Positions 102-35,443 of a stretch of DNA of 35,868 bases are shown one piece after another. The stretch is taken from NCBI GenBank assembly GCA_964035545.1, contig CAXIUT010000239.1, forward strand, positions 1-35,868, read 5' to 3'. The position numbers and the translations under genes are program-made. The notes below the pieces were generated by a model. The model saw nothing but the letters and a program-made list of their open reading frames with translations. It was not told the DNA's origin and searched no databases. The stretch comes from Bugula neritina. Taxonomy: Eukaryota > Animalia > Bryozoa. Numbering within the stretch: the first letter of the stretch is position 1; the number at the start of each line of letters is the position of its first letter.

Positions 102-272
102 CGGAAAAGCTAAAAAGTAATCATGCAATAAACACTACTATAAAATGAATAGGAAGATAACAGCCAAGATACTAGTGACTTTGTTCAAAGAAGAATTTCT
201 ACTTCTATTATTAGAAGAAGTAGAGATATAAGTCCTCTAAAAAATAATGAAAAAGAAGAACATTAATTTTGA
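102..272 (+). pseudogene. Probable 3' fragment of a gene cut by telomere addition
   Basis: Frame open from the telomere junction (RKSEKVIMQETLLENEEEDNSQDTSDFVQRRISTSIIRRSRDISPLKNNEKEEHEF) to a TGA-T stop, convergent with the Aurora gene. No recognisable homology. Confidence 0.4.
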
Positions 273-314
273 TTATTTATAAGTTTTAAATTGACTGGAA
301 TAAATTATAAACTA

Positions 315-2017
315 TCATTCTTACAATTGGAGCAAGAACCGATGCTTAAGAGCCTACGATGCTTTCATCCTCTGATCTGGATTCTTCAGTATCAGCTTTT
401 CAATAAAATCAATTGCTGAGGCTGACATATTCTAAGGATAAGTCACAGCTTCCATCTAACAGTTTATTATTTTTTTCATAGTTTACTTCCTACTAATATG
501 ATAGAAAGGAGCCTTTCCAGTCAAAAGTTCAAAAGTAAGCACTCCCAAACACCAGAGATCTACACTCATATCATAGTCTTTACCCTAGAGAATCTCCGGA
601 GCAGCATAGTCAAAGGTTCCACAGTATGTAGTTCTTCTCTGATTGCACAGAGTAGCCCAACCAAAATCACAAAGTTTACAAACGTTCTAAATAAATGAAT
701 TGATACGTTGGATATAACTATATTTTAAGGTTTGATGTCTCTATGGGCTATGTCATGGTCATGAAGGTACTCCACAGCCTCTGTTATTTGCTTTATTATT
801 GTTGCTGCTTCTATTTCAGACAGAATTTTATTCTTTTTGAGTTGAGAATAAAGAGTACCCTGCTCCATATACTCCAAAACGATGAATAGATGTGTACTAT
901 TATCAAAAAAACCATAAATTCTGAGAATATTCTTATGATTAAGAAAGCTCTGCAATCTAACCTCTAGAGCCAATTGATCAATCATGAAGTGGGACTTGAT
1001 CATTTCTTTAGGTATTTTCTTTAATGCAAATAGGCTAGAAGTGTTGCGATGCCTTACCATCGATACTATTCCAAATTTACCTTCTCCTAAGGTCTTCCCT
1101 GCCTAAAAATCTTCAAATGATATTTTATTGGACTTCTTCCATTTTTATTAAACTTATAAAAACTTAGTTGGAGGCGATCTAGAATCTGAGTTGTCGGTTG
1201 AAGTTGGAGACCCAACCTTCTTAAACCTTTATTCATAGGAGTATTTAGGCAACTTTGGAGTATAGCACTCATAGGGTTCTTGAGTGATTATTTTTTTTCT
1301 AAAAACATTGTTATTTTTTTATGAGTCATCCTGTTCGTTTTAAGGAGGATATGATGCTTTTCGGTAGTTTTCTATTTTGACTTTATGTTCTTCATAGGGC
1401 TTTGCTCGAGAAGAAGAAAAGCTTTATGGCACAATTTATTTTTATTTTTTGCTTTAAACCATGTTTTTTCTAAACCCTCCTGACTTCCACTTCTGTTTCA
1501 ACTACTCAATCGACTGTTCATTGTTGTCTCCATAATCAATCGATCTTAGACTTTTTGTCTATGGAACATACTGTTCTTTACGTGAGTAATAAAGATCGTA
1601 TTTATTAGGTGCTTTCATCAAATCGGTACTTGAGTTTATGGTATGAGTAGGGTTGCTTTCTGAATATGTTTTTTAAAGTCTATTTTTGAAGGTAGAGTTG
1701 CTACTAATTGTCTGTCGAAGGATACTACTCGGTTTTTGTAACTTGTCTTTTTCATCATTATGAATCCAAGTGTTGAAATCAGAAGATTTATAGTTGAGTG
1801 TTTGACGTAAGGTAGAGTATTCGCTGGGTAGTTTCCTTAAATTTTATAAATTAGTGGAGGAAACAGTCTGATTCACTGCCAACTTACTTCCCTCTTTGGG
1901 TTTTATCAAAGGTTCGTAGACAGCAAACTTATTAGGACTTTTCTTGAAGTTCAAGTCGCTGGTGAAAGAAGAGGTCTTGCTAGCTGGAGGAGAAAATATC
2001 GAAAACTTGTCTTTCAT
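315..2017 (-). CDS. Aurora-like Ser/Thr kinase, ~560 aa, long disordered N-terminus
   Basis: With TAR=Glu: DFEAGKTLGEGKFG, FALKKI, HRDIKPEN, DFGWA, RTTYCGTFDYAAPEILEG, VDLWCLGVL. One 20-nt intron at 687-706. Confidence 0.93.
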
Positions 2018-2271
2018 TCTTAATTAAGCAATATAATGAAATATGACTTTCACAGAAATTTATTTGAACATACTTTAAAACACTTAAAAACTCCAAAAAC
2101 TATCTAGAAACTAGTTCAATAAGGATCATAATTTTTAATATATTTGACTTAAATATGAGAAAAGTTGACTATATTAGATAAACAAAATTAAAATGCATTA
2201 AAACAAGTACAATGTTGATATATTAGTAGGTATGTTTAATATAATAGAGTTATATATATAACGAATAGATA

Positions 2272-3451
2272 ATGCATCATCACCTTTTCCCGATTGAAAA
2301 ACAAAAGCATTAAATTGAAAGAAGAATAAATCAACTTTAATAAAGATTTAAAGAGGTAAAGATTAATTTATGTAGAAAGAAATACCAAAAAATAATCAAA
2401 AAAGAATCAATAACTATCTACAAGATTAAAATAAAATTATAGCTCAACACCATACCTCAAAAACATTAGAACTTAGAGGTAAAATAAAAACTCAAGGAAA
2501 TAAAAATAAACCTGGAAAATAACAAACCTTTAATCCATCTTTCAAATCACCTCTAACAGAAACAATCAACCTCTAAAACAACTATGAAGCAAAATAATCA
2601 AAAAGACAATACTACAAAAGGTAAGGTAGAGACTACAAAAGGTAAGAGAGAGACTACAAAAGAGAAGACTACAAAAGAGAAGACTACAAAAGAGAAGACT
2701 ACAAAAGAGAAGACTACAAAAGAGAAGACTACAAAAGAGAAGACTACAAAAGAGAAGACTACAAAGGATAAGACTACAAAAGAGAAGACTACAAAGGATA
2801 AGACTACAAAGGGTAAGATTAGAAAGGATAAGATAAAGATAAAAAGATAAAATAACTCTATGATGTACTAATATGATGAAATAGATGATGCATTTGATAC
2901 TAAATGGACAAAAAAACATCGAAAAGGAAATAAATTAATTAAAAAGTAAATAATAAACTAAAAAGAGTAAATTTTAAGGACAGAATAGCTATCTTAGAGG
3001 TCAAATAACTCCTTTATAGTCTAGTTTATAAAAAAATAGCTACTCAAAATAGAATAAACATCAAAAAAGTCATAAGAAGATTCTTCAAGAACTCAACCAA
3101 AGTCTACCTCTCAAAGAATAGACAAGCCATAATAAGGATACTAAGTTAATAAAGCAAAAAAAAGTAATATCAAAGAAGTAAAGGTTTGATTTAGAGGGAA
3201 ATTTATAGTAGCTGAGAGGACAGTCGAAGTGCAGTGAGAGAATTCGAGTTGGAGAGGAGTGGAAGGGACGAATATGGTGTGAGGTGGAGGGAAGAGTGAA
3301 GGATTCATAGAAAGAGTATAAAGATACGATTCATCGTAATAATAAGCACTAGTTTTAACATTTAACTAGTACTTTTGAATTGCAAAGGAAGTTAAAAGAT
3401 GACTTATTGTAAAAAATATATCAACAGTGCAATCCTCAAGTGTATAAGTGA
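2272..3451 (+). CDS. Hypothetical coiled-coil protein with DYKRE pentapeptide repeats, ~379 aa
   Basis: Continuous frame after removing 20-nt introns at 2356-2375 and 2865-2884 (the second removes an in-frame TGA). Ends TGA-TGA. Confidence 0.7.
2610..2830 (+). repeat. Coding 15-bp tandem repeat (GACTACAAAAGAGAA)
   Basis: Directly visible. GAA and TAA alternate at the same codon position between copies. Confidence 0.95.
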
Positions 3452-3468
3452 TGAACGAATGATATAAA

Positions 3469-5109
3469 TCACTATTTTTTACATTTTTTATTTTTTTAAA
3501 AGTTTTAATGAGCCGTTTATATAATTTTAAGCAGTTAGGCTATTTGATTTTACGCAAGAGAGTGAAAAGTTTTAGCTATTTTACCTATTATATTTTTAAC
3601 ATTATGCTTTTCTATTCCACAATCAATCATATTCAAAGCATTATTCATCAAACTTGTATAAACTCCATTTTTTATATAAACCTATCTTTACTATTGAATT
3701 TTACAACTAGTTATACTTTATCTAACACTCCAAAAAAGATAAAACCTCCAAAAAGCCAAATCATTGAGAACTTTTTATTTTTTCAATTCATCTAAAATAG
3801 TTTTTCTTCTATTTTCTATTGAATTCGAATAGTATGAATTACCATACAGAATAATAGTTTGTACACATCTAAAGTCCAATTCAGAAATAGCCATTTTCAA
3901 TATCTACTTAAATATATAAACCAAAATCACGAATTATTAATTCTCAAATTTAAAACGACCACTCTTTCGAAAAGATTATATCCAAATCACAACCTCATTC
4001 CTGTATTATTAATATTTAGTCCTCAATTAAACCACCATCTCCTCCACAAACTTACCAACAACCAACTTCTCCACAAACTTACCAACACCCAACTTCTCCC
4101 CATGCTTACCAACCCCCAAACTCTCCCCATGCTTATCAACACCCAACTTCTCCCCATGATTACCAACACCCAACTTTTATTAAATATACCTTAACCTTTA
4201 CTCGCTAAAACTGTTTTCATTTTTAAAATCAATCACATCCTTTTGGGATAGAATATTTGATTTAAACTTTTTAAAAGGATCATCAAATGATAGTTGTTAA
4301 ATAGTTTTTGAAGCAAACGATAGTTGTTAAATAGTTTTAGTAGCAAATTGGTCTTTAAATTAATTGGTATTTTGCCAATTAAAGATATCTGTCTTCTTGA
4401 TCATAGTATCTATATCATATTGAATATTTCTAATCAGAGATATTTAGTGTACGTTCATCTTTTTAAAAAAATCTACAAATTACTCCTACACCTTTACATC
4501 CAACTACCAGATCTTCTTCTATCTCTCTGAAGCACTGCTCTCAAAACTAACCATCCCTTGTCTTACTTTCATCCAATCACTCTCCAATATCTCTAAAGAT
4601 GTAGATTGTTCTAAAAGTATATTTTGAGATATTTTTCTATTGCTTATATTGTCTTTATATAAAACAGATATTTAGTTAAGAATAAACTTCTAGTCAAGTT
4701 CTTTTAACTTTTGCTCAATACTACCTTTGTTCTTAAGCAAACTATCAAAAGATATCTTCAAATCTTTCTACATATTTTTCAACTCAGATAACTGACTCCT
4801 CATTTCCTCTTATATGGGAATCAATCCTTCCTTCAATAGCTAAGCTTCTCTTTATAACTGTTGTCGGAATAGTCTTATCTGATGAGAACGCTAGTTTATT
4901 AACTTCTTAAAGTTTAATATTATCTTACAGTAAAGAGGATGTGATGACTGGAGTTCACTTATTTTTTGTGCCGATCTATTGATAGCTTTTTCATATTGCT
5001 ATTCAGCTTAGACTCGTAGTAGAATTGAAGCCATGAGACTGTTAAGAGTTTAAAAGTTTTGAAGATGGTAAGAAAATACCTGATTGACTTTTGGAAATAC
5101 TTAGTGCAT
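3469..5109 (-). CDS. F-BAR-like coiled-coil plus SBF1/SBF2-like domain protein, ~546 aa
   Basis: Intronless ORF. N-terminal LLRVEAEEQYEKAINR...HEISLIRNIQYDID resembles F-BAR; C-terminal FRKSGRF...DFRCVQTIILYGNSYY...LNDLAFWRFYL resembles SBF2. Domain calls from pattern recall. Confidence 0.65.
4040..4176 (-). repeat. Coding 27-bp tandem repeat (EKLGVGKHG, about 5 copies)
   Basis: Unit CTTACCAACACCCAACTTCTCCCCATG on the plus strand, degenerate copies. Confidence 0.9.
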
Positions 5110-5155
5110 TTGATAGATATAATATTAAATGATTCAGAAGTTAGTGGATAAATCA

Positions 5156-7615
5156 TCACAATCTGAAATTAAAAACATTTTAATCCTATTTCTATTTCTA
5201 TCTGATCCTCAAGGTCAACCTCTCTATCTCTCGCTTATAGCTCACTATCTACTCCTTCAAAACCTCTATCTACGGAATCAACAAACATTACTCAGCCGAT
5301 TCAAGCATACGCATTATCTATCCTCCACTCTCTTCTTAACTATTCTCTTCTTCATCAACTTAACTACTCTCTTCATCAACTTAACTACTCTGTCTTTAAA
5401 CCTATCTACTATTTGGAATTAACTATTATTCCTCTGCTTGAATCCCACTTTCTGCCACCAACTTTTATTCAGTTTGAGCCTCACTCTAAATATATTATGT
5501 CTCATAAGTCTGAATTCCACTTGATACTTCTTCCTTCTCTTCTGTTTGCATCCCACCTTAAACCACAACATATTATAGCTGAACCTGACTTCTTCTTTAG
5601 AGTTATATCTGACTTCTTCTTTAGAGTTATATCTGACTTCTTCTTTAGAGTTATATCTAACTTCCTCTTTAGAGTTATTTCTAACTTCCTCTTTAGAGTT
5701 ATTTCTAACTTCCTCTTTAGAGTTATATCTGACTTCTTCTTTAGAGTTATTTCTAACTTCCTCTTTAGAGTTATTTCTAACTTCCTCTTTAGAGTTATAT
5801 CTGACTTCTTCTTTAGAGTTATATCTGACTTCTTCTTTAGAGTTATTTCTAACTTCCTCTTTAGAGTTATTTCTAACTTCCTCTTTAGAGTTATATCTGA
5901 CTTCTTCTTTAGAGTTATATCTGACTTCTTCTTTAGAGTTATATCTAACTTCCTCTTTAGAGTTATTTCTAACTTCCTCTTTAGAGTTATATCTGACTTC
6001 TTCTTTAGAGTTATATCTGACTTCCTCTTTAGAGTTATATCTGACTTCTTCTTTAGAGTTATATCTGACTTCTTCTTTAGAGTTATATCTGACTTCTTCT
6101 TTAGAGTTATATCTAACTTTCTCTTTAGAGTTATATCTGACTTCTTCTTTATAATTCCTTTTAATATATATTTTTTTGACTTATTATTTAAATATTTTAC
6201 TTTTCATATTCAGTCTGACATTCATTCTAGATATGTGCTATAAAGATTTAGGTTTGACATTAATTCTATTTTATTTAGCTATTCTTTTCAGTTTGATATT
6301 CTAATTCTCTTTTGGTTATATTTTTCTAAGTCTGTATTCCACTCTATATACCTTATTTATAATATTCAGTTTGACTTTATCTATCTATTTTTTATCTTCT
6401 TGATATCTACATTATCTTCAATACTGATATAATCTTTTCACTACTCTTCTATTGCTATTCATTCATTTCTTTTATTGTTTTTCTTACATCAGATGCTATA
6501 CTTTTCAACTTTAAACACTGACCACTCAATAAAGATTCCAGCTATTTGATATTATGTTTGTTACGAGTTGATTCCCGAGTGAGTAAAGAGTACTATTTTG
6601 TTAGTTTAGAAAGTACTTCTTCGATAGTTAATTTTTATCTTAACAAATCTTAAAACTATTTCTGTTCAAAAGATAGTTGATTGGATAATGTTGTATTTAC
6701 TTCTTTTACTTTCTCGAGTTTCTCCAATAAACATACTTTCTATTTATTTAAAGAAGTATGTTAGACAGATAAATCAACATACTTCTCTTTTTAAGTTTAT
6801 AAAGCAGTTCTAGTAGCTATAACCTATTGACTTATACCTTAATGCTCTTATACTTTCTAACGAATAGACTCAGTAATCTTTTTAAAAGTCACAGGTTGAT
6901 CATTCTTAATACATCCTAGCTTTTATATTTTAGCAAATAAAGCTTTAATTATTCTATCTTTCTTGTCAATGCTCTCTTGAAGCTCTCTTACCTTTCCATC
7001 CAACATTTTTTATTCTGACATTATTCCCCCTGACAACTTCTTTTCAAGACCACTTTTAATTAACCCATCAACTGTTACTTTTGGACTTTTTTCCCTTGCT
7101 ATCAAAGTATTCTGAAAAACTCCAGAACCATTACTGCTAGGACATAAAAACAAACTCTCAAATTACTAAACTATTGATTTTTGACTGAGAATATATCTTT
7201 ATATATTGTCTTTACACTACCTTATTTTTGATTTATTGTTTTACTATTAAGCTTTAATAAGATTTTTTTTAGCTATTTATTCCCTTTGAAGCTATTATTG
7301 ATATTTATCATACAATCGACGAGGCCTACCATCCAAATATTTAATCACAATAGAAAAGATTTTATTAATTTTTTAGTTTCTACCAGACTAATCACCTCTA
7401 TCTCTATCTTTTTTGCTATTTTTATCAGGCACTATCGCATATTAAATAAATTTATTAGTATCAGTAGTTCTCAAAGGATGCTATTTTCTATTATAACTAA
7501 CCAAGTTATTATTCTGCTGAGTTCTTTTGAATTTGCTAGAATTTTTAACCTATCTAGAACTTCTGTAATTAATACATTTATACTATCGATTGGCCTGGGT
7601 GGTGTTTCTCATCAT
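5156..7615 (-). CDS. Coiled-coil protein with 8-aa repeats and multiple QT motifs, ~819 aa
   Basis: Single 2460-nt ORF under table 30, ending TGA-TGA. Repeat reads RRSQIELE/RGSEKELE. Confidence 0.8.
5586..6150 (-). repeat. Coding 24-bp tandem repeat, about 23 copies in two main variants
   Basis: Units TGACTTCTTCTTTAGAGTTATATC and TAACTTCCTCTTTAGAGTTATTTC on the plus strand. Confidence 0.97.
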
Positions 7616-7649: not shown

Positions 7650-8756
7650 ATGAAAATAAGAAACCTTTTTTATTTCTTTGGGAAATATTATGCATAAGAA
7701 TAAATAAAACTATTTAACAACCTAGATCAGCTTAAATATAGGATAGGTAAATAGTACTTTTTTGTCAGAAAAAACTATCAAGAAATAGGACATTAAATTC
7801 AAACATTGATTAAAAGACATGAATGGTAATTACTCAGGGACGGGTTAGAATTAATCAATATTAACTAACTAGATTCTTGGCTGATTCTTAAAAAAATATC
7901 TAATACTCTTACGAAAACCCTTAATTCATAAGTGCTTTTTGAAGGAATGAGATAAAATTAAATCAAAAGCATTCTTTCAATCTTAAACATCCTTCGATAC
8001 TAACCTATCAAAAATAAATAATACGACTCACTAGACCCATTCTACGAACAACTATAGCAGTATTTTTAGAATCTATCAAAAAATGAAATAGATTTGTTTT
8101 ACTTTTAGCTAGTTAAAAATCTCATTCATACTCAACCATCTCTTTTCCAAAAGAAGAGAAAATAAATTTAAACTTTTATTGAAGTAAACTTATAAGCTAT
8201 GTTATAAAAAGGATACTATTTAACAAAAATTTTAGCGAAAGGAATGATATCTAACTTTTGGAGCATTTAGTTCAAAAAAAGACTTGTTAGATATGTCCTT
8301 TTCACCAATAAAAACCAGTAAAAGATAAACCCCCTGCTCTTTGCTGACCTGAGTATACCTACAAATATAGAACAAGTAGTTAACAAATAAAAAGTAAAGA
8401 CATAAACAGATATATTCAATATTTTAGATGGCTATCAATACGATTTCAAAACTAATGTTCTTATCAATAAATACTAAGTCGATATTCTTCTTTCTGATTC
8501 CATTATAGTCTAGTATAATGGACATCATCACTACTCCATCAATTCACTCAAACTCATGCCTACTCTGTATTAGCAATGGAGATGCTCAATCCTAAAATCA
8601 AGAGGCTTTCATCTTGTTATCATTCCTTATGACTAGTGGAAAGTTCTAAAGTATTTTTAATCTAAAAGATAGTACCTTGTCACCAAAATATAAAATAATC
8701 TCATCCAAAACTACTCAAATAATTCAGTTAATGATATGCTTATTAGTAACGACTGA
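7650..8756 (+). CDS. RAP-domain protein, probably mitochondrial RNA-binding, ~368 aa
   Basis: C-terminal YEVDILL...IIVEYNGHHHY...ILKSRGFHLVIIPYDEW matches the RAP domain pattern. N-terminus MKIRNLFYFFGK is presequence-like. Confidence 0.85.
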
Positions 8757-9000
8757 TATGTTTATTAATAATGACTGATATGTTTATTAAAAACGACTGA
8801 TATGTTTATTAATAATGACTGATATGTTTATTAGTAACGACTGATATGTTTATTAGTAACGACTGATATGTTTATTAAAAACGACTGATATGTGTATAAT
8901 AACGACTGGTATGTTTATTAGTAATGACTGATATGCTTATTAGTAACGACTGATATGCTTATTAGTAATGACTGGTATGTTTTATTAGTAACGACTGATA
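8732..9000 (+). repeat. 22-bp minisatellite (TGATATGTTTATTAGTAACGAC), about 12 copies, including the RAP gene stop
   Basis: Directly visible tandem array. Confidence 0.95.
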
Positions 9001-9035: not shown

Positions 9036-10262
9036 ATGAAAAACTTTATCCACCGCAACATCATGTTAATAAAAGGATCAAAGAAAGCTTCCTCGATCTA
9101 ACGTGAACACAATAAAGGTCCAATTAGCAAACACAACAGTCTCCCTAAAAGCGGATCAATGAATCAAAGAATATCTTAATTATAAAAGAAATTGTAATAT
9201 GTCTAACAAAATTATCAACAAGAAATAATATAACAACTATCAACGATCAAAGATGATATCAGACTAATAAAATCACACATGTTCGAACAAAAATATAATC
9301 ACACAGAAAAACAAATCACACAATAAAGCCAAGATTAATAAACTATTTTTGGATCAAACAAACAAAGAATGAAAAGCCAAAGCTCAGAACACGATAGCAA
9401 ACTAGCTTAAAAAAGTCTAGTCCATAATAATAGTTCAAAAGTAGTAGCTGTTTCATAGATAATCCAGGCTAGAATCAAAAGAAGTCACTCCAACTATCAT
9501 AAAAGTAGCATCAACCTGAAGGCCATCTCATCTTTCATCAAATAATACAAACTATAAACTCCTTAGTTCAGCACTATCTTCTATGGCTACTCAAAAAGAA
9601 ACTCACATCCAGTTGTTGTCAAATACGCCCCTGAAGGACTAGCACCCATCATAGAAATTTATGATAGACTTTGGAAAAATATAGCTATGGCTAAGTGGCC
9701 CTGTGTCAATCGACTACTTGACTTCAAAAGATAAGATTCCAGCTATATAGTCATATAAAAAAACAAAGGATCCATCCTAGGACTACCTCCTAAAGCCATC
9801 CTCATCGATATCCTCAAAATCATAGAATTTATTCACGACTGCGGCTACCTCTACAGAAACATTGAACCAGAACATTTCATGCTGAATTAGGAGGGACAAC
9901 TAGTAGTCATTGACTTCAAAAGGACAAAAAGATTCATCGATATCAAAGGACACTCTTTATAGGTTGTAGATGTCTACAATGGAAGTCCTTTCGCCAGCAA
10001 CAACCAATTAAGAGGATTTCCCTAAAGTAGAAAAGATGACCTTGAATCTCTAGGATATCTGGCCTTATTGCTCCTTGAAATTTAAATTCCATGGTTTGGT
10101 TGTAGTCGAGAACAAACCATCAAAATAAGGTCATCTCTCACTCTACAATAGCTATACAAAAATAACTCTAAGTGGGTCTAGTTTATGGCTGTGGTGATGA
10201 AGAGTCCCAAAGGAGAACGTCCTGACTATAAAAAACTTCTAGACATCATATAATACAGCTGA
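9036..10262 (+). CDS. Casein kinase 1-like pseudokinase, ~408 aa
   Basis: CK1 signature SRKDDLESLGY, FASNNQLRG, IPW, ERPDY. Catalytic loop reads YRNIEPEH and DFG reads DFK. Confidence 0.85.
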
Positions 10263-10305
10263 TATATCATATAATACAGCTGATATATCATATTATACAG
10301 CTGAT
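10245..10305 (+). repeat. 21-bp tandem triplication of the CK1-like gene stop region
   Basis: ATCATATAATACAGCTGATAT in about 3 copies. Confidence 0.9.
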
Positions 10306-10337
10306 TTGTCTTATTTTCATTTCTTATTATTAGTCTA

Positions 10338-11491
10338 TCAAGTTCTCTCTGACAACCACTCTTGCATTACTTTTGCTACATCAGAAACGTGATCGTCCAG
10401 CCAAATTGCATGCCACATATCAAATATAATAACTGTAGTCTTATCAGTACAAGGACTGAACTTTTAGAGATCCAGGCAAGCAAAAGGATCCACCAATTTA
10501 TCACTTCCAGACTGAATCAATAAATAAGGAGTTTTAAAGTTTGAAAACTATTTACGAGTACGAGCCATTGCCATCATAATTTCCTGAACAGTTTTTGGAT
10601 AAAGCCTTCCATGATAAATGTAAGAATCACTTTGAGAATAACTATCCAGACGGTACTTTGATCCGTTTCTACCCGTTTGTTTTAAAAGCTGTTTGTAAGG
10701 AAATAATAATGAAAAGAGCATTGTTAATTTCTTTAACAGAGGATAATGCATTTTGTTTTACCTAAGAGAAGGACTTAGAAAGATAGCTCCATTTACAATA
10801 GAATGGTTCTTCAGAAGAAGATTAAAAGCAACTGCTCCTCCCAAACTCATCCCAGATAGATAAATCTTCATGTTTGGATTTTAAGATTTGACTTTGATCA
10901 CATATTGTTCAGCTATAGTAACTAACTGTTCGAAGGATTCAAGACAGCCTCGACGAGAACCTTCTGATTGTCCAAAATTGACAAAATCGAAACCTTTCAA
11001 TAGATATCCATCTTTAGACAGAGTACTAGCAATTTATCCGAATGTTCCAGTATGTCCATTGAGTGAATGCAAAAATATGATAACAGCTTTAGTTTTTTTA
11101 TTGTTTGGAGTCCAACTATATGTCATTAGTTTAGTTCCATGATAGTTCCATATTTCTTTATCAGGAAATATAGGAATTTGTCTTTAAAAAGAAAAAATAG
11201 ATTTTTTAAGACTTTTTATCCTCTACAACTCTTCATTTCTATCTTTAAATGAAATATTTTTGAAATAATCATAGTCTAATTGAAACTTATCTCGAAATTT
11301 TACCTCTTTAGAGTAACTCTTAACCTCTTTCGAAAAGCTATTTCCCAGAAGCGAGTGTAAACCTTTTAATAAAGTAAACTTCTGGTTTAGATTGATCCAT
11401 AGTCGAACAACTAACATAACTATCACATAAATATATCACTTACAATTAAAAATAAATCCAATAAGACTAACTATTTAGAGTATTCAGTCAT
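10338..11491 (-). CDS. Alpha/beta hydrolase, monoglyceride lipase/lysophospholipase (Hydrolase_4) family, ~377 aa
   Basis: IFLHSLNGH, GFDFVNFGQSEG, GMSLGG nucleophile elbow, QSGSDKLVD, MWH; triad intact. The 5' exon depends on an atypical 20-nt intron at 11420-11439; the alternative start is ATG 11417. Confidence 0.88.
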
Positions 11492-11539: not shown

Positions 11540-11802
11540 ATGTAAAATATCAGGCAAGTACCTTCAAAATTATATTGGTTCTTGTCCGCTATCATCGAAC
11601 TCATCCTCATCTTCTTCGTCTCCATCTTTAAACTCAACAAACCCTCTGACTCACTCACCTCAGATGACATCAGAAACCTCAGACGAGGAAATCAACCCGG
11701 CGGACATAACGGAAATGATTGGAGATATCAAGGATCAAGAGGTAAGTATCCTTTTATTTAGGTTCGACCAGAGTGCCCATGGGAGGATGAGGAGGAGGCT
11801 GA
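11540..11802 (+). CDS. SELENOK: Selenoprotein K, ~80 aa, Sec at TGA 11788-11790
   Basis: N-terminal TM segment LYWFLSAIIELILIFFVSIF, Gly/Arg-rich tail ending RVPMGG-U-GGG-stop, 20-nt intron at 11742-11761, downstream SECIS. Confidence 0.9.
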
Positions 11803-11819
11803 TTCGATGGTTGAGGAAG

Positions 11820-11972: not shown

Positions 11973-12048
11973 TGGGGTTGGGGTTGGGGTTGGGGTTGGG
12001 GTTGGGGTTGGGGTTGGGGTTGGGGTTGGGGTTGGGGTTGGGGTTGGG
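11973..12048 (+). repeat. Internal telomeric tract T(GGGGTT)12GGG
   Basis: Perfect 76-nt tract between the convergent SelK and cyclase-like 3' ends. Confidence 0.97.
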
Positions 12049-12066
12049 ATAACAAACGATTCACTA

Positions 12067-22917: not shown

Positions 22918-23053
22918 GTAATAAAATTATAGATAAAATAACTTGTTTTTTTAATCAAATATCAAATAACTGTCAAAGTCGTCTTTTCAGTCATTTATCT
23001 TAATTAAATTATCAGAATAAATAAGATAGAATTAGTCTTTAAGATGAGTAAGT

Positions 23054-23889: not shown

Positions 23890-25337
23890 ATGATAGTTAT
23901 AATTCTCCTTCCCTTACTAATCTCCTCTCTCACCATCAACAATCACTTCAAAGATTGCAATTCCTCTCAATATGACTTCTTCAGCTAGTACATCTTAGGA
24001 AAACAAAATTAACTCAATAGAACCTTCTAGATTCTCAATAAACAAGTCAGTCCTCTGCCTTAAGTCACTTATAATTCAAGCTAACACTTCTATCGCTATT
24101 CTATTTCAAAAACTAAAGCCAGTTTTTACTACAGAGATAGCTAGCAAAGGGCTCAAATCGTAGGAGATAACACTATTTATATAAAAGGAGGAAAAACATA
24201 AGCAAATTTATAATTTAAATGGACATTAAATGAGATGTAAGGAATAGGAACAGCATAATGTCTAAGCGACCAAATAACTTTTTCTAAAACTGTTTTTCTT
24301 GAGAGAGGATTCATAAAATACAAAATATTAGATTACACTAATATATCCTACTATTCGACTAATTGCACTATCACAAGAGTCGATCCAGAGCTATAACAAA
24401 AACATATAGTTGTGATGTAGGACATGATCAACACCCACGAAGGATATAAACATTTAAAAGAATATCTGGAATAATAAATCAGTCGCAAATATTAATAAGC
24501 CTTAAGCGAAAGTCTACATTTTTAAAGACAACCAGTTGACACATCGTATCAGTATCAATGGATTGATGAAACTCCAGGTAAAAAAAATATGACCATCAAC
24601 TACACTATACTACCCGTTGGATGCCATCTACAAACACACGGAATGTCTCTCAATTTTGTTACTTAAATAAGCTAGTATTAACATTGGGAATGTGGAGCCC
24701 CAGTCCCCACGTCTCCTAAAGATTAAAAGTATATTCATAGTTATATAGAAGCTATGGAGGAGTTCAGGAGTATCTTTCCCTTTCGATCCTTGAAAATACT
24801 ATTAGATACGCAATAGAACTAAAACAACTAGATACAGAACTGAATAAATAGAATTGGTAATCAATAATGTTCCAATTCTATGCAGGAGATCTCTACGCTA
24901 TAATTCCCTTCCTAGCAACTAAACACTATGCCAGCTAAGTAGTAAAAGGACATTGCAACGCCACTACTAGTAATTTAAAACTGACATAATCTAGTCAAAA
25001 CAACCTCTTCTTGTCGATGCACTACTAATGCCAACTCAACATCAATTCTATCACTATCAGCTAGTTTACTATTGACCCTAATTTTGTTATTTAAACAGTA
25101 CCTCAACAAAAATACCTAGATTTCTATGTTAGAAAAGTCAATAAGTTCAGTCATTTTAAAGATGTAGGATAGTATAAAATATTCAACCTAGATCTAGCCA
25201 ATACAATACTCACTAAATGCCTCGAAAATGTCTAAAATAAAAAAGTCTTTGGAAGTGGATGGAAAATATATGCCAGAGACCTACCTGCTATCTAAGTCGA
25301 TTAAGGACTACTTCTCATCTACGATAAAGCCAACTGA
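23890..25337 (+). CDS. Secreted protein, possibly BPI/LBP (TULIP) lipid-binding fold, ~475 aa
   Basis: Signal peptide MIVIILLPLLISS, 20-nt intron at 24729-24748, beta-rich pattern and AGDLYAIIPFLATKH. The ORF is solid; the fold is tentative. Confidence 0.6.
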
Positions 25338-25344
25338 TCTTATA

Positions 25345-25500: not shown

Positions 25501-25511
25501 GCTATGAACAA

Positions 25512-26243
25512 TCATTTTTTGTTGTACTGTTTTAGCCATTCAGCTTTATCTTACAAATATCCATTCAGCTGGTAGTTAGGATCAGGCAAGTTTTTTTTAT
25601 GTCCTCCCCGTCTACTCACCTCTTAGACTTACTTTTATGGCTGTTTGATATTGATATTGGAACAGACCTTCAAATAATCCTGAAAAGTATACTCTTTATG
25701 AGTATTGTTCATGATATTCAGCTGAATCTCTTCGTTTCTTGGAAATATCATGTAGTTTGTTTCTACTCTATCTTTTTTGAGTTTTCTAAATGACTTTTCA
25801 CTATATAGTCTCTCAAGATCGTCTTTCACTCTTTTGTAGGTGTAGTTGAGTAACTAGTCGTCTACTTATAGTCCTCCTGGATGTTTAAGAATTAAAGACC
25901 TGAGTTCTTTTTCATTCTTTACATTGTATTTGTTATTCCTGCATATTTTGATATTTTCTTTGTTATTGCTTTTTTAGACAGGCTCAAAATAATATTTTTC
26001 TTTGAAAATAGGATCGTTTTTAACTACGTCTTCTATAAATGACTTCACAAATTGCTAGTCTACACTTCTGTTGGCGACAAACCTATTTTATTAAGCCATC
26101 TTTCGAAATGCTTAATTGTTTATCACCTTTTCTATCTTAATTGGGTCTCCATGACTGTTCTTAAACTCGTCTTCAAACAAAAACTTAAGAATTGTTAACT
26201 GTCCCTGGTCCTCTCTCGACAATGTCACCAAACTACTATTCAT
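25512..26243 (-). CDS. GTF2E2: Transcription initiation factor IIE beta subunit-like, ~243 aa
   Basis: KYNVKNEKELRSLILKHPGGLEVDD...YKRVKDDLERL...MIFPRN resembles the second winged helix of TFIIE-beta. Confidence 0.7.
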
Positions 26244-26380
26244 AGATATTTAATATTATAATACTTACGACTCTTTTCCCGCTATATCTTTTTAAACAAG
26301 TTTAATTTGGCATCTAAATATATAATTTACCAGATTTTGATTAATTACAACCTCTCTTCGCTCAATATATAATATATCTT

Positions 26381-28624
26381 ATGAAACTCAGACAATTACA
26401 CGTCAAAATTGGTCTCTGCAGTCTCAACAACGACCCTCTCGATTTCAAAAACAACTACAGAAAAATATGTTAAAGCATCGAAGAGTGCCGTCGTCTCAAT
26501 TGTTCCATCAGAGTAGGAGGATAACTATAAATTTCAGGATATTCATGTGAAGATCACTTCCTCTAATACGACACAGTTTTCCACTCTTGGGATATAATCA
26601 GAGATATTATCGCCTCAGGAGTAACTAATGGCATCGTTGTAGACATCGGTTGTCCAGTTCTACACAAAGCAGCTCTCTACAATGGCAGAATAATCATCTA
26701 TAACTCCAAGTTGATTGGTATTAGATGTAAGATGAGTCTTTTCGATGAAGGAAACACCTTTGAAACCAGATACTTTTCTGCCTGGAAACATTCCAGACAA
26801 ATTGATCAGTTTATGTTGCCTCAAATACTCCAAGATCTTACAGGACAACGGACAATCCCCATTGGCAGTTTTATCCTGAACTTTAACGACACCTTTGTTG
26901 CCTATTAAATAGGATAATAAGCCTGGATTTCTGACAATCCAATGATAGATGCTTCTCTTGACGGAGCATAGATCTTTCTCAGTCCTTCAGGATCAGAAGC
27001 TTAAAGAGGAAAGTTAAAAAGGAAGTTACAAATGCTTGAATAATTTACTTAGAGACATGGAGGAGCATATGCCCATGTTAATATCAAAGGAGGAATTGGT
27101 CAAAGAAACTTCTATGATGGTTGTTGCTTTTATGCTTAGAACGGAAAAGTAAAAGAATTGTCATAACCCTTTCATCTGGGAGATGTCCAAGTAACTCCTG
27201 TAGTAATAAACCTCAATGCAGTTAGAACATTCAGGATAAATAACAAATCGTTCCAGAAGGCCTCACATGGAGTATCTCTAATTCCTCGAGTTAAAATATA
27301 AACTAGTATCGCTACAAATGCAGAATAGTATGTTTATGATAGTTAAATTCATAAAAAAGAACTGAAAAGAAGAAGGAATCTGTATTAATTTTAACATGTA
27401 TCTTATGAACCTTCTGCTTATCTATGGGATTTCTTGAGAAAAAGCAGAGCTAGAGGATTTTTCTTGCCTTTATCTGGTGGATTAGACAGTTGCGCAGTGG
27501 CTCTTATAGTCTATAATATGTGTTTTCTTATCTACAATCAAATCAAACACTCGGCACAGTCATTGTAAATCCTATAACAAGTGAGGCAAGTAGTTAAAGA
27601 TAAAGAATATGTCCCTTGTAGTACTTAATAACTGTGTGGAAAAATACTATGGACAGCTTATTTGAGCACTGAAAATACGAGTTAATTAACTAAAAATAGG
27701 GCAGATAAAATAGCAAAACAGTTTGGTATCAATCATCGTAAAATAAATTTTGATAAGATATATCAATCCTACAAACAAATCGCATTAAAACAATTTAATC
27801 TTCAACCTAAATTCAAACTAGAAGGGGGATCTTAGAGGATGGACCTTTCTCTTCAAAATATTCAGGCAAGGACAAGAATGGTTCTATCATACTTCCTAGC
27901 TGCTTTAGAAGTAGAAAAAGCCAATCAACCAGGTTTTTTATTAGTCTTAAGCGCAGCTAATTTAGATTAAACTCTTAGAGGTTACTTCACTAAATACGAC
28001 TGTAGTTCAGCTGACATCAACCTTATTGGCTCCTTCTCAAAGTATCGACTCAGATAGTTTGTAAACTACTTTCAAGGAGTCCATAACTTTGATATTTTAA
28101 AAGAGGTGCTGGAAGCTACTCCTTCAGCTTAACTTAGACCTTTAAAAAAAGGATAGACAGTTCAAAATGATGAAGAAGATATGGGTCTATCTTATGCCTA
28201 GTTATGTGTGTTTGGAAGATTTAGAAAGATATAAAGATTAGGTCCTGTTTCAATGTTCGATAGAATGATTTATAAAGCAAGTTATTCAGATGTCTAAGAA
28301 TTGGCAACAAAAATAAAATTATTTTTTACTACATACGGCTAGAACAGACATAAAGCTAATACTCTACCTCCAGTATTTTACTATGATCCTGAGTGCAGTG
28401 AACACAATAGGTATGATATTCGACCTTGGGTTTATGCAACCGATTGGTCCTATCAATTCTAAATAATCGACGAGAGAGTAAGAGAGATCAAAAGCAAAAA
28501 ATAGCAACTAAGTAAAATATAAAAACAGCTAAATGGAGGACAATAAGACAAAAATATCAATGCCATTTTGCTACCACCCGTTAAAGAACAAAATAAAGAA
28601 GTAACCAGAATTCTTAATCTTTGA
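26381..28624 (+). CDS. NADSYN1: Two-domain (glutamine-dependent-type) NAD+ synthetase, ~747 aa
   Basis: RVGGELEISGYSCEDHF, YLWDFLRKS, LPLSGGLDS, LQNIQARTRM, GYFTKYDCSSADIN, DEEDMG. Intronless. Confidence 0.97.
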
Positions 28625-28661
28625 TAAATAATTATTCTTATTGTCAAATTAAGTATATATA

Positions 28662-29209
28662 TCAAACTGGAGGGTACTCTTTTGTTACTACCTCTACAAA
28701 TTAGTCGAAATTGATCCTACCGTCTTTATCTTTGTCTGCATATTCGATCATTTGTTCAATTTAGGTTGGAGAAAACCTTTAGCCTACACTTTCGCACATC
28801 TAACTGAACTATTACACTCCAAATGATCCTAAACCTTGCTTATCGAACATCTAAAATAAATGTCTTAAACTAGATTAGTTGGTATTATCACCACTAAATC
28901 CAAAAATCTTAAGAAAAGTTTAAAAATCCATTTAAACTTAACTAGATTGAGTTTGAACAATTTGAAGAATTTTTCCAGCCTATTTCTATAGTCCTAAAGC
29001 TTTGATAGCAGTTGATAGTTATTCAGTTGATACATTACCACTCTTATCATAATCAAAGATATCAAAACATTATTTGAGACGAGCTACATCATCAGCTGGT
29101 AAATTTTTAGATGCATAAGCAGAAGGGTCAAAGACATTAGCTTGTTTGAGATGAGAAGAAACCTTAATAAAAATAAAATTACTGATCTAAGAGGAGATTT
29201 CGTCGACAT
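28662..29209 (-). CDS. Centrin-like EF-hand protein, ~175 aa
   Basis: LKECFDIFDYDKSGNVSTEELSTAIKALG; VGERFSPTEIEQMIEYADKDKDGRINFDEF. 20-nt intron at 29163-29182. Confidence 0.92.
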
Positions 29210-29239: not shown

Positions 29240-29812
29240 ATGAATGTAATTAACAAACTCAAAAGCAAAAAGAATAAATAACTCAATTCGCAACAATAAA
29301 ATCTAATGGAAAATCAAATAACTCATCCTCAAATAGTAGAACCGTCAAATACTGTATCTATTCAGTCAACAATAAGTCAAAAAACTACAAATAACATTTC
29401 TTTATTTGGCGTTCATTAATAGAAAAGTTAAAGTTTTGAAAGAGACCTCGATTAAATAAATATTAATGAATATTATTAAAGAAAAGATAGAAAGAAACAA
29501 ATGATAGATAAAAGATAAAGCAGCTTTACTTTTCAATAAAATGAGATCAAAGAAGATCACTATAATCTCAAAGTCAAAAAAACATTTAATCTAGGCGATA
29601 TTTGTATCTTTGAAGGAGAACTAGCAAAGAAGGTATAAGGAAAGTAAGTTCAAAGGTATAGAGTAAAGCTTTCGTGTGGTTTTGATAGTATTTAATTTCC
29701 AGAGATGATTAGCAATATCCTTCTTTCTCAGATTACTATGCTAAACCAGCAAGAAGGATTGTTTGTTAGTGATGATATAATAAAGATAGCCTAAAAAAGA
29801 CAAAAGAAATGA
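29240..29812 (+). CDS. Hypothetical protein, ~190 aa
   Basis: ATG to TGA-T ORF that fills the gap between its neighbours. Confidence 0.65.
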
Positions 29813-29832
29813 TTATACTACTATTATAAATA

Positions 29833-31449
29833 TCACCTTTTGCTTTATCTTGATTTATACTTTCTATTGCTTTTTATATTTCTATCCAAATATCTCTCTT
29901 TCTAGTTTTATTTATAAAGATTAGTATTTTCTGTTTTCTAGATATTAGTTGGAGATTCTCTTGAAGAAGTAGTCCTAAATATAAAGTTGAAAGCTACAAA
30001 GAATACTAAAGTTGTTACTATTACACTAGATCCAACACAAATTAAAATTAAAAGAGTCATTGATATCTAGTATCCTTCTTTATTGTCTTTTATTTTTAAC
30101 TCAAGATCTTTTAGCTTTTTTTTAAGATATTTGACTTAATTATTGACCATAAACTGATCTATGACATTGTTTTTTCTTTAAGAATTACTTTTATTAAATG
30201 ATTTTGTTGACATTGTTTAGTGATTAAGTCCTAAATAATATTAATAAATAGCACTAGAAAAGAGTTTTCTCTCAGATTCAGATACCTTATTCGTAATATT
30301 AGTTCTATTAATAAGAGAAGAGTTGTTATTTTGGTACATTGATAGTTGATTTTATAACTATTTAATTTGAAGAGTTAAATTATTCAAATAGAGGATTTGT
30401 TTTTATTATATTTTTGATAATTTTTGTAGTTATTGAAAAAAGAATTTAATTAAATTATTTTGAGGAATTGTTTTATTTCCCTCTCGAGCCAGTGTTATCA
30501 TCTTCTTCAAATCTTCATATAATTACATACTCGAAGTATCTACTTCAGGCTCAATCAAAGTAAAGTTGACATTCTATTGATAGTTATTCATAGCCTATGC
30601 ATAAAGACTATTTCCATACACTTTTATCTGAGTCATCGTAAAATATCTCCAATTTCCATGGGCACTAATCACTTTCAACTTCAAAAACCTTATCACCTTA
30701 TTAGCAGTTCTAAAATCCTGCTATCCTGCAGTATTTTTAGCATTTGCCTCAACCAACTGAAACCAGTTATCCTTATCATCTTCTTTATCATATTGATCTA
30801 AAGAAAAAGCCCCATAAACTATAAACTAATTTATTGTACTAGAATAATACTAATTAGTTTTGATTCCTATTCGATATATACTTGCTTCTTCCTTCAAAGC
30901 AATCACTATTTCTATTGGCAGTTCTTAATCAGTATACATATATCGATCGTTGTTATCTTAAAGAAGTGCCTGAGGAGCTCTTATTTTATCAGAAGATAGA
31001 CGTAAAATAATGGCTCCTCCGTCAATACTAGCAAAATTTTAATAATATTCAGCTGCTTTAGTCATTACTTGTCCAATATCGAAATACTCCATCAAATCTG
31101 ACCTTACTTCTCTTATAAGATATACTATTTCTTAAAAAGTGACTGAAAGTGTTTATATAGTGCTCAATATCCATTGTATTATCAAATTTCTATTTTATAT
31201 TTCCTGAATATCTATTTATTCTTTAAGGTTAATCGTAGAATAGTTTTAACTGGGTTGAAAGAGTTGATTTTAGTCTATAAAAGATTGATATTAGTGCTTA
31301 TAACATTTTTTTGATCTATCAAAGCTTACATTAATCGATCTCAATATCTCAAAATACTACTCAGAGAAAGTCTACTCATAAGAACCACAAAAAGACAAGT
31401 TTATCAGAACTAGCAAAAAAAAGACCTTCCTAGAATCGCTTTTCCACAT
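29833..31449 (-). CDS. Mid-SUN domain protein (SLP1/SUCO-like), ~538 aa
   Basis: N-terminal hydrophobic segment, NFASIDGGAII, TNEYYSSTINEF, RFLKLKVISAHGNWRYFTMTQIKVYG, coiled coil, C-terminal TM. Confidence 0.85.
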
Positions 31450-31540
31450 CCACACGTCTATTACTATTATAATAACAACAAAGATTATTTAGGCTTAAAT
31501 ATTATCATTTTGAAATATAATTATATTAAATGTCCAACAA

Positions 31541-32719
31541 TCAATAGGCACAAGGTTTGTTGCTTGGCCATGCATCGGCATCAATCATTGCAACTTTTTC
31601 ATCTTTAAAAACAAATCTATCAATCGCATCAGCAACAGTAGAACCTACTAGTTGAGGTATTTTCTGAGTAGAAACATTATAAAAATTACCAAAACAAGCA
31701 TAAGAATGTTGACAACAACTAATAGTCCAGATACTATGATTGTTTTGAACGATATTTTATACAATGCTCAGATAATTAGTCCTATATCCTTAGATATAAT
31801 TCATTTGTTTTTAGTTACATCTAGATAGAGTCATTCCTGATACTCCAGCAGACATACAATCCATCCCCATTGATGTTTAAAGACCTACAGCATCATACTA
31901 CGAATTCAAAAACATCACCTTACTCTAGATAAAGTATAAAGCATTTTGAATACTAAAACATTTCCATTATTAGCCCACATATTTCTGATTACATCCTTCG
32001 ATGGGAGATTTCTAGTCTATATTTGACAACTTTATGAGATTTTTTGTCAAAACATCATATATATGAATAATAGTATTAGGATAACTCACATTGGCAAACA
32101 CACTTGAATCAGCTATAGTGTAGACCTTGCTAGGCTAGTCAACTAATGATCTAAAATAGTTACTCCACATCCAAGTAGCTACTCCTCCAGCTGACGCACC
32201 AGTCAAAATCACTTTACTTGCCTTGTTTATCTTATATCTATTCAATAACCATCTAAAATGCGATCTTGTATTATCAGCTCCTCTAAAGTATAATTGAGTA
32301 TCTTTATACGATACTGGATCTTTACTGCTACCTTGGTGCAATGAGCTGTCACAGTATGTTATAATTATCTTTGTAAAGTTGGCAAATTTACTCAAAGAAG
32401 GATCAGTTGATAGATATCCTCCAGGAGATAAGACTTATTTTGATAAGTATTTACTACTTCCCAAGTCTGTTTTAGATCTTTTATAACAATCTTCAAGAGT
32501 CTGTTCAACAGTCAAGCCAGAACAAAAGCCACCTCCTACAAAAAATATCAAAAAGTGTTAAGTATCTCCTCCCTAGTGTAGATATAAAGCAGGAGAAGAT
32601 CCATCCAAACATCTAGCTTAAGGATCTGTATTATGAATTACCAATTTATAAGGTTCTTATGCACAGTTGATCAAGGATAAACAACTCAGAAGAAACAAAA
32701 ATCCTATTTTAAGATGCAT
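31541..32719 (-). CDS. Pectinacetylesterase/Notum-family secreted esterase, ~392 aa
   Basis: Signal peptide, ARCLDGSSPALY, FVGGGFC, LGSS, YCDSSLHQG, LYFRG, LTGASAGG, CQHS, WPSNKPC. Confidence 0.93.
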
Positions 32720-32776
32720 TCTACTATTAAATATCAATTATAAGGTAAAAAGGAAAATTATTATTTACTTTGGGAA

Positions 32777-33154
32777 TCATTCGCTTTTTAGATAATTTTA
32801 ATAGTTATCTCTTTCTACTTAAGCCATTTCTTAGTAAAATTACTAAAAAGAATTGTTGTTACTGCTTTTTGATTTTTAATCCTCTACTAGATCTTTTTCT
32901 AAAGGAAAAGTAGACTTTTACTCTTCTTATTATAATCTTTGAGGGAGATATATTTCTTAAAAGGCTTAAAAGTATGATTTTTTAAATTGTTTTTATTCTT
33001 GCAGCTCTTAATTTTCATCTTTATATAACTAAAAGCTTCCTTGCTGATACTAAAGCTTTTGATCTTATAAATTAGAAGGATTCTTCTTGAAATATTATTC
33101 GGGACGCTCTATCTTTATCAAATAAACTCTAACTTTCTTATTTTAAGAGTCCAT
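32777..33154 (-). CDS. Small acidic hypothetical protein, ~125 aa
   Basis: ORF very rich in in-frame TAA/TAG/GAA, ending TGA-T. Confidence 0.6.
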
Positions 33155-33245
33155 TTCTCCAATAGTGATTAAATAATTATACTCTAAGAAATAACTTAAT
33201 TTTTTATTAAAAATATAAACAATTCTGAATTAAACAAGATATAAA

Positions 33246-34538
33246 TCATGATTCTACTTGAATTTATAATTCACTTTTCCATTCTAATATTTTGATAGGT
33301 AATAGATTGGTAGTTAGCAAAAAAGATTGAAATCTTTTTATTTAATTAATAAAAGAGATACCTAAATCAAAATGTTTATGACGGTTAACTTTAAGACAAA
33401 GACTACAAAATTGATATAATTTTTATGATGATTTGGAGAGTATATAAATCCATAAGGTAAGATCTATCCACTAGTAATACTTTTTATATTAGAACTAGCT
33501 TTACTCTAAAGATTTTATTATTAAATAAAACTGTTGATCGATTACTATTGAGGTTACCATTGCATAGCAATATTTAGGTAATGACCAAAAGGATTATTTA
33601 TTAAATTATAAATAAATAAGGTATATTCCTTAGTCTATTCTATTTATTAGTCTATGATGTTTTATTCTTTCATTCCATAGCTATAAATGGTAAAATAATT
33701 AAAATAGTTAGAGTTATTTCAAGTGTGTCTTCAAAAGGATGTTTGCTTTGAGATAAGTTCCTTGTTTTTATAGAAGTCTTCCTTCTGTAAAATTTTATCT
33801 CAACCTAAAACCTTCATCTGATGATAAATATCTCATCTATTACGAGGTAATTGGCAACTTCAAATGTAATCTTTACTGTGGTTATTCCACAACAATCGGC
33901 TACTCTTACATCACTGTGCAATACTACGATTAATGCTATGATCTCGAGTGATTTTCTTAGTCTTACTCTTTTTCAAATTAAAATTATATCTACTTTGGGT
34001 TATTCTTCATAATTTTAGGTTAATTTGGTTGTTTTTCAAGTCTATACTCATACTATCCTTATGATTTTTAAAATAAGAGTTAATTTTTTGACTTATTTTC
34101 TATCTTTATATCATCAATAGGAAACATCTTTTATATTTGAATTTTAGGTACTTTGAAATATCTTTTCAACCGGATTACATTATCAAATAGCACTAGAGTT
34201 TTAGCCTATGTCTATCTCCCAACAAGATACCTTCTTCCATTAGATAGCTACAGTCCAAAACAATGATGCTACTCAATAACAGAACATCTCTTAGACATCT
34301 TAGTCTGTCTCAAATTGATTACTTATTCTTAATTAGAAGTATCTTTGATAGTCATAGTTAATTCTGTTTTAGGGAGATAAATGATAAAAGATGTTCTTTT
34401 TTTCCATTTAGAAAAAAAACTTGATTCTCTTTTTATAAATATCTAAAAATGCAACTCTTCTTTAAGACTAGAACGATACTCTCTCTGCTTCTCACCTTAT
34501 CTCGCGTTACTTGATTCAGTCGACCTCTAACCTATCAT
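33246..34538 (-). CDS. PH-like plus START-like domain protein, ~430 aa
   Basis: FIKRESSFFSKWKKR (PH-like N-terminus); LWNERIKHHRLINRIDEGIYLIYL (START-like). Domain calls tentative. Confidence 0.6.
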
Positions 34539-34584
34539 CTTATTATCTGTTGAGATTTATTATCTATCACATAATATCCTACTA

Positions 34585-34740
34585 ATCATATTAACCATCT
34601 TAATCATATGTTAGTCACATGTTAGTTATGTAAATAATGTAAATCACATGATAATCATGTAAATCACATGATAATCATGTAAATCACATGTTAATCATGT
34701 AAATCACATGTTAATCATGTAAATCACATGTTAGTTATTT
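34585..34740. repeat. 20-bp minisatellite (ATGTAAATCACATGTTAATC) with 10-bp sub-period
   Basis: Directly visible, downstream of the stop at 34793. Confidence 0.92.
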
Positions 34741-34792
34741 TAATCAAGAGAATCAAATAATATGATACAATATTTAGATAACTTAGAAGAGA

Positions 34793-35443
34793 TCATTGAG
34801 TGTATTGTCTGAGACTTTACCTGGCAGTTTGAGCTCTTTGATCTTCTTCTTGATATTTTTTTTATAAATCTTGTAGTTTTTTCTTTTGAATGTTAGTGAT
34901 GCTCCACACTTGAGATTGATTCATTCCTTTCTGATAGTTATTAGATTTGATATTTCCCAAATAAAATAACTATTTACCTGGTGACCTTAGTTCTTGGTTG
35001 AAGCAGAAGGTACTCAAAGTCAATTCTGATTCATTTTATGAGATCGTGGTAGATAGATCATCTCCAACCATTAAACTTTGATACTGGTGGGCTATTTGTT
35101 CTTCAGGAAAGAGCATTGTACCTGCTGTTAAGGTAACATCCATCTATTTTCTTGCTTTTATCCCTAAGGTAACTTTTCTATGTGTATTGGAGATGATTTT
35201 AGTGATTTTGAGGTCATTGGATTGAGCCAAATTGTAGATATTATCTTTTTCTTTGATTTATTCAAAGCCTATTTCCTACATTGTTATTTTAGGATGACTT
35301 ATCCCCAGTCTCTTCTTCTACTTCTCCACTATCTCTACTACAGGAGTCAAATTCTTTAGAGTAAAGAATTTTTTGGGAGTATAGCTGTTGTAGTTTTGGA
35401 CACATTGTTTAAAAACTTACTATGTTTTAAGAGGATTGAACAT
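34793..35443 (-). CDS. Hypothetical protein, ~216 aa
   Basis: ORF with a globular-looking core (LTAGTMLFP...YQSLMVG...TFCFNQELRSP...QSQVW). Start uncertain. Confidence 0.65.

Follow-up and report, generated by a model that had tools for sequence, protein, structure and literature searches.

The stretch of DNA analyzed here, hereafter the window, comprises 35,868 nucleotides (nt) of contig CAXIUT010000239.1 from the genome assembly of the bryozoan Bugula neritina (GCA_964035545.1), and the subject of this work is the base that directly follows the UGA stop codon of its genes (position +4). The window, with a G+C content of 30%, is capped by telomeric repeats at both ends, C4A2 at the start and G4T2 at the end. 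The large contigs of the 216-Mb assembly belong to the animal host and the small ones that we sampled are mostly ciliate-like: 15 of 20 small neighboring contigs start with the same telomere and 19 of 20 have a ciliate-like G+C content. Because of the telomeres at both ends and these ciliate-like neighbors, we read the window as a ciliate's macronuclear chromosome, complete and carried along in the bryozoan genome assembly.

Its reading frames are long, ended by TGA alone and rich in internal TAA and TAG. When paralogs within our sample were aligned, TAA stood opposite glutamate 34 times and glutamine was absent from its top eight partner residues; the signal for TAG was weaker (glutamate 8, lysine 8, glutamine 4), and a tRNA gene (anticodon CUA) is found at L020:3981-4052 (stretches outside the window are cited by such handles). 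From these patterns we conclude that TAA and TAG are read as glutamate and that UGA is the sole stop, a code that fits the previously described peritrich nuclear code (NCBI table 30). A TAA codon is also found in the gene for the release factor eRF1 of this ciliate (L001:589-1869, minus strand), at a site which we take to be that of the conserved Glu55, and fits the reading of TAA as glutamate.

The sample, ~215 kb in all and taken from the same ciliate, consists of the window, a further 19 stretches of 10 kb each and the eRF1 locus. Among the ciliate chromosomes we also met a contig of 77.6 kb (L010, contig C245) whose G+C content is only 13% and which does not begin with a telomere; it may be an organelle genome and was left out of all counts. 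Genes were called with a 3-periodic Markov model of coding sequence, trained on the same data, together with a model for tiny (20-nt) introns; a plain codon log-odds score separated the frames too poorly, and the Markov plus intron model was used instead. In this finder a gene starts at an ATG, the first in-frame TGA is its stop and everything outside genes is scored zero. Since the first in-frame TGA is always taken and the sequence beyond it scores zero, the +4 base cannot sway the calls. Exactly 20 nt was the length of 88 of the 94 predicted introns, with the consensus GTA...TTTAG (in the window, for example, 687-706, 2865-2884, 12191-12210, 22336-22355 and 24729-24748). A scan of intron lengths by GT..AG alone gave no clear peak, and the 20-nt class emerged only within the gene model. 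Left unspliced, these introns give false open reading frame (ORF) ends with background +4 bases: the unspliced ORFs 12311-13504 and 13401-14810 end in TGA-G, and the removal of five 20-nt introns turns them into one gene of 942 residues that ends in TGA-T at 12067.

The first-pass annotation of the window had listed 26 stops, 24 of them TGA-T, and a base-by-base check found that all 26 are TGA with the next base as listed (24 T, 2 A). On the plus strand, TGA-T closes a 49-codon ORF next to the left telomere which is weak as a gene (123-272; stop and next base at 270-273), as well as the genes 2370-3451 (3449-3452, a tandem TGA TGA), 7650-8756 (8754-8757, low score), 9036-10262 (10260-10263), 16209-17768 (17766-17769), 23890-25337 (25335-25338, with an intron at 24729-24748), 26108-28624 (28622-28625, 838 amino acids) and 29240-29812 (29810-29813, low score), in addition to the SelK-like gene described below. 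On the minus strand it ends a protein kinase gene (315-2071, with a single 20-nt intron at 687-706; 314-317), a 554-codon ORF (3469-5133; 3468-3471) whose stop lies just 17 nt from the convergent one at 3451, a gene for 819 amino acids with another tandem TGA TGA (5156-7615; 5155-5158), the gene 10338-11417 (10337-10340), the five-intron gene 12067-14995 (12066-12069) and the genes 15366-16063 (15365-15368, low score), 18801-20669 (18800-18803), 20700-21353 (20699-20702, low score), 25512-26099 (25511-25514), 28662-29209 (28661-28664) and 29833-31092 (29832-29835; the ORF extends to 31584). It is likewise found at the end of a pectinacetylesterase-family gene (31541-32719; 31540-31543), of a gene on the same strand with an unclear upstream limit (32776-32779), of the ORF 33246-34643 (33245-33248), which may reflect a frame switch within one gene and not a gene end, and of the gene 34793-35443 (34792-34795).

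The two exceptions, both TGA-A on the minus strand, are as first annotated. One, at 21854-21856 (21853-21856 with the next base), is well supported: it ends the gene 21854-22917 (score 20, one intron) and no in-frame TGA follows within 10 codons downstream. A run of imperfect ~27-nt repeats lies directly past this stop (window 21760-21850, minus strand: ...TTATCATCTGTGAGTATTGG...). At the other, 23054-23056 (23053-23056), the finder predicts no gene end, and the next in-frame stop is a TGA-T at 23012-23014, also as annotated. Together with those at 270 and 33246, this makes three weak ends among the 26. In the window the finder, blind to the +4 base, made 24 calls of a gene end: 21 are TGA-T, and the three non-T ends are 21854 (TGA-A), the in-frame TGA at 11788 that we presume to encode selenocysteine (Sec) and a spurious low-score fragment at 4455.

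When we extended the count to the whole sample, TGA-T made up 110 of the 146 predicted gene ends (75%), 81 of the 101 with a score of at least 10 (80%), 64 of the 75 with a score of at least 20, which we call confident (85%), and 31 of the 35 with a score of at least 40 (89%). In the genes of this ciliate there is thus a strong preference for U, specific to the position right after UGA and found at ~85% of confident ends, and the 24 of 26 seen in the window lies at the upper end of what the sample-wide rate leads one to expect. The shares hardly changed when the intron penalty was varied or when ends followed by coding-like sequence were dropped. The eRF1 gene of the ciliate itself, its polyubiquitin gene and its H+-pyrophosphatase gene all end in TGA-T. 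The polyubiquitin gene (L013:404-1315, minus strand) consists of four repeats in 303 codons, none of them TAA or TAG, and its last repeat reads ...LRLRG before the TGA-T, so that the final Gly76, needed for conjugation, is absent from the last unit.

A bias of this kind could have been created by the annotation, had the listed ends or the gene finder favored ORFs that happen to end in TGAT; the original stops were, after all, picked by eye and three of the 26 are weak. We regard this as extremely unlikely, given that the finder does not see the +4 base and that the T fraction increases with gene score and, in a mechanical list of TGA-bounded ORFs, goes up with length, from 0.40 in short ORFs to 0.69 in those of at least 400 codons. 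Errors of the finder act in the opposite direction: the non-T end at L016 near 7327, for example, arose from a 20-nt intron with a GTG donor that was overlooked. Since several of the non-T ends are gene-finder errors of this sort, the true TGA-T rate is probably somewhat above 85%.

The first-pass annotation had proposed that the +4 base be compared with the composition of 3′ untranslated sequence, and set against the 3′ flanks the excess held up at predicted ends, with 80-85% T against 44-60% under four null models. T follows 40-41% of all TGAs and 46% of those in unannotated DNA; within the 3′ flanks it accounts for 44% of the bases from +7 to +30, 54% of the bases after A and 60% of those after TGA. 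The last figure was used as the harshest null and the 44% of the flank positions as a milder one. The 24 of 26 stops of the window differ from both (p = 2.8e-4 against 60% T and p = 3e-7 against 44%), the blind calls in the window (21 of 24) give p = 0.0035 against 0.60 and the confident set gives p = 1.7e-6 against the same value. Outside the window, in the 19 stretches and the eRF1 locus, 66 of the 85 ends with a score of at least 10 are TGA-T (p = 4.5e-4 against 0.60 and p = 2.6e-10 against 0.44). Along the sequence that follows the stop there is a single spike at +4; C is modestly enriched at +5 (26-32% against ~12%), and background is reached from +6 onward. Because +4 alone spikes, the signal goes with the stop codon rather than with 3′ untranslated region (UTR) composition.

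Convergent stops of neighboring genes lie as little as 17-37 nt apart (3451/3469, 28624/28662 and 29812/29833; window 3449-3471, 28622-28664 and 29810-29835), and their 3′ UTRs must therefore overlap or run into the antisense strand of the neighboring gene. With so little space between stops, a separate motif for 3′-end processing is unlikely. An origin of the bias in base composition, or in a 3′ UTR or polyadenylation motif that starts with T by chance, finds some footing in the T-richness of the flanks (44% overall, 54% after A, and TGA-T as 60% of the TGAs within them). Yet the excess is significant over every null and occurs at a single position defined by the stop, the convergent stops leave no room for such a motif, and a metagenome contig of 45% GC with the same 20-nt introns still shows TGA-T at four of five ends, a very small sample. 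We therefore hold this explanation to be very improbable.

The T at +4 could also have been retained for the sake of the next codon, either to allow a back-up TGA in tandem or to allow some other T-initial codon, with no effect on the first stop. Tandem UGAs have been reported to be enriched in UGA-only ciliates (PMC6879139, PMC10553269), and in our sample TGA is the codon directly after the stop in 6 of 101 genes, while an in-frame TGA occurs within six codons of 26% of the T-ends compared with 16-20% in the other two frames. An immediate TGA in just 6% of the genes nevertheless falls far short of the 80-85% that carry T; TAT, TCT, TTG and TCA are commoner as the next triplet, and from the same counts the T at +4 still amounts to ~80% once genes that have a TGA among the first codons downstream have been set aside. 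It is thus very unlikely that a second stop explains the bias.

Is the stop signal then a tetranucleotide, as the first-pass annotation had it? What stands of that claim is that the base after UGA is strongly non-random and that the effect is confined to +4; what we find is a preference of ~85%, not a four-base codon. The stop signal does not demand U as its fourth letter, as confident gene ends with A, C or G after TGA do occur. A is the commonest of these minority bases, and G and C are the rarest. One confident example is a Rab-like small GTPase-like protein that ends in ...KKGCC-TGA-A (L005:3943-4404), a natural C-terminus for proteins of this type. The frame past non-T stops is as non-coding as the frame past T stops (mean score -2.1 against -2.4, p = 0.87), and the coding scores of the downstream frames in the sample gave no sign that UGA is translated before A, C or G.

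Only one in-frame TGA gives the appearance of being translated, namely the codon presumed to encode Sec in the SelK-like gene (11540-11802, plus strand, with an intron at 11742-11761), whose product would have a transmembrane start and a Gly/Arg-rich tail. A partial piece of its first exon was queried against Pfam and gave PF10961 (SelK_SelG) as the only match (E = 0.0033), at 18.4 bits and thus below the cut-off of 23.3 bits. The gene ends in ...RVPMGG-U-GGG followed by TGA-T, and the stretch ...PMGG-U-GGG resembles what we take to be the C-terminus of human SelK. The gene is best read as having one Sec codon at 11788 (TGA-G, 11788-11791, plus strand; the next base of the TGA at 11788-11790 is G, as first annotated) and its most likely true stop three codons on, at 11800 (TGA-T, 11800-11803, plus strand). 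A search for a selenocysteine insertion sequence (SECIS) element of this gene returned no Rfam match at E ≤ 1, and the fold of its 3′ region was not distinctive (z = -1.4). Among the 53 candidates scored out of 6392, the sole one on a small contig for a ciliate tRNA-Sec was a tRNA-Ser(UGA). As for other Sec contexts, all the glutathione peroxidase matches lay on host chromosomes, and the one ciliate match to the Rdx family carries no in-frame TGA. The SelK-like gene thus displays the two contexts side by side, UGA-G within the frame and UGA-U at the stop, in a single gene. The suggestion that the U at +4 serves to separate stop from Sec decoding is not supported as an explanation of the bias: it comes from this gene only, and selenoprotein genes are too few to produce a bias across the whole genome.

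The same gene bears on a further explanation, namely that eRF1 or the ribosome of this ciliate recognizes the U at +4 directly. UGA-U would then be a true four-base stop, and termination in other contexts would be poor for lack of recognition and not through competition by tRNAs. The bias is indeed unusually strong and uniform across gene classes, the UGA-G of the SelK-like gene appears to be passed while the UGA-U three codons on fits the expected end of the protein, and the N domain of eRF1 is divergent. Its YxCxxxF motif, aligned to human residues 125-131, is YNCDSRF where the human protein has YLCDNKF, and the human TASNIKS loop appears, by eye and unaligned, to read RASQIKD (QIKD for NIKS). 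A 24-residue piece with the NIKS loop had no match in PDB, so that the YxCxxxF piece is the only one aligned; the gene itself, as mentioned, has TGA-T for its stop. Against direct recognition stand the ~15% of confident ends that lack U and beyond which the frame is non-coding, and also the solved termination complexes, in which, as summarized in PMC5829715, the +4 base stacks on G626 of the 18S rRNA rather than on eRF1, with purines favored. All in all we consider direct recognition unlikely. Less likely still is that UGA works as an efficient stop only before U, a true quadruplet read by the divergent eRF1, in which case the ~10-15% of genes with UGA-A, -C or -G would undergo substantial or regulated read-through along with the Sec codon UGA-G.

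UGA is the leakiest of the stop codons. In this ciliate a leaky UGA would have no UAA or UAG back-ups downstream, and the tight packing of the genes would make read-through costly. Because of this leakiness, the absence of back-ups and the cost of read-through, selection would be expected to favor the tightest UGA context. Going by measurements in yeast, U is the +4 base that would do least to help the near-cognate Trp and Cys tRNAs compete with eRF1, and so termination would be tight. On balance we favor, as the somewhat likelier account, that the U at +4 reflects selection on the context in which termination takes place at the ribosomal A site, which would tighten a leaky UGA without making the U an obligatory fourth letter. 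Read-through in yeast follows the order UGA-C > A > G > U, and UGA-U is the only context that favors neither Trp- nor Cys-tRNA (Beznoskova et al., PMC4748822). The tightest context in that hierarchy matches the base preferred by the ciliate, and the order also fits the bases that it avoids, G and C being the rarest, although the yeast order was measured on reporter constructs and the ciliate is known from genomic bias alone. The commonest minority base in the ciliate is A and not C, as expected in AT-rich DNA.

Three points weigh against this account. First, UGA in mammalian cells does best before a purine, worst before C and rather poorly before U (PMC5829715), and the order found in yeast may therefore not carry over to the ciliate. 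The expectation, voiced in the first-pass annotation, that a purine at +4 strengthens termination in mammals and yeast agrees with the mammalian data but not with yeast, where UGA-U shows the least read-through (PMC4748822). Second, the T fraction is flat across tertiles of TAA/TAG use (0.82, 0.82 and 0.85), a crude proxy of expression. This fits poorly with weak selection on efficiency, because weak selection would predict a rise in genes with low TAA/TAG use; a uniform bias would agree with highly effective selection, as in a large population, or with a stricter demand of the mechanism. Finally, the gene ends are predictions from sequence.

Seen next to known systems, this case is a very strong instance of the known +4 context effect and not a new mechanism. 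Tetranucleotide termination signals were described by Tate and colleagues (McCaughan et al., 1995, as cited in PMC4967479) and revisited by Cridge et al. (2018; PMC5829715). The likeness lies in a non-random base after the stop and in an effect that fades within one or two positions (PMC5829715), and the difference in the base itself, since the ciliate favors U whereas mammalian cells favor purines after UGA, with U rather poor (PMC5829715). The bias of ~85% seen here exceeds every +4 bias given in the literature that we consulted. Among ciliates, C is avoided at +4 in the UGA-only Oligohymenophorea sp. PL0344 and also in Tetrahymena and Paramecium, most clearly in highly expressed genes (PMC10553269). 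PL0344 resembles our ciliate in having UGA as its only stop, UAA and UAG reassigned and a context bias that was read as protection from read-through, but PL0344, Tetrahymena and Paramecium avoid one base (PMC10553269), while here one base is nearly fixed across gene classes. That the context of stop codons matters in ciliates is also known from Condylostoma and Parduczia, in which UGA is in addition a frequent sense codon whose meaning is set by its position near the transcript end (PMC4967479); our ciliate differs in showing no sign of translated UGA-A, -C or -G. We found no report in the literature of a near-fixed U after UGA in any ciliate. For relatives we relied on one metagenome scan with a piece of the H+-pyrophosphatase, which yielded mixed taxa and few usable contigs, on which the gene model had not been trained. 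Two of these contigs, from other AT-rich ciliates with TAA and TAG as sense codons, have mostly TGA-A ends; together with the 45% GC contig mentioned above, these very small samples hint that the bias is lineage-specific and not a by-product of AT-richness.

Apart from the stops, G4T2 tracts 60-96 nt in length occur in the interior of contigs; all are oriented like a right-end telomere, and unique sequence follows past each of them. They lie in the window at 11974-12045, between two convergent gene ends (11802 and 12067), and at 18120-18185, and elsewhere at L009 6989-7060, L013 9156-9227, L015 8293-8358, L017 8357-8422, L021 9605-9700 and L024 4833-4892. These tracts could mark alternative chromosome ends or joined molecules.

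In practical terms, TGA-T is a useful gene-finding cue in this ciliate and probably also in its relatives, as it separates true ends from the false ORF ends made by unspliced 20-nt introns, for example in the gene 12067-14995. Beyond this, the mechanism by which the +4 base tunes termination is disputed, with rRNA stacking, sensing by eRF1 and competition by near-cognate tRNAs all under discussion and with rules that differ between organisms. The combination of a single stop codon with a near-fixed pyrimidine at +4 runs against the purine-stacking rule, and this ciliate would offer a clean test case in nature for the question of what mechanism sets the +4 preference.

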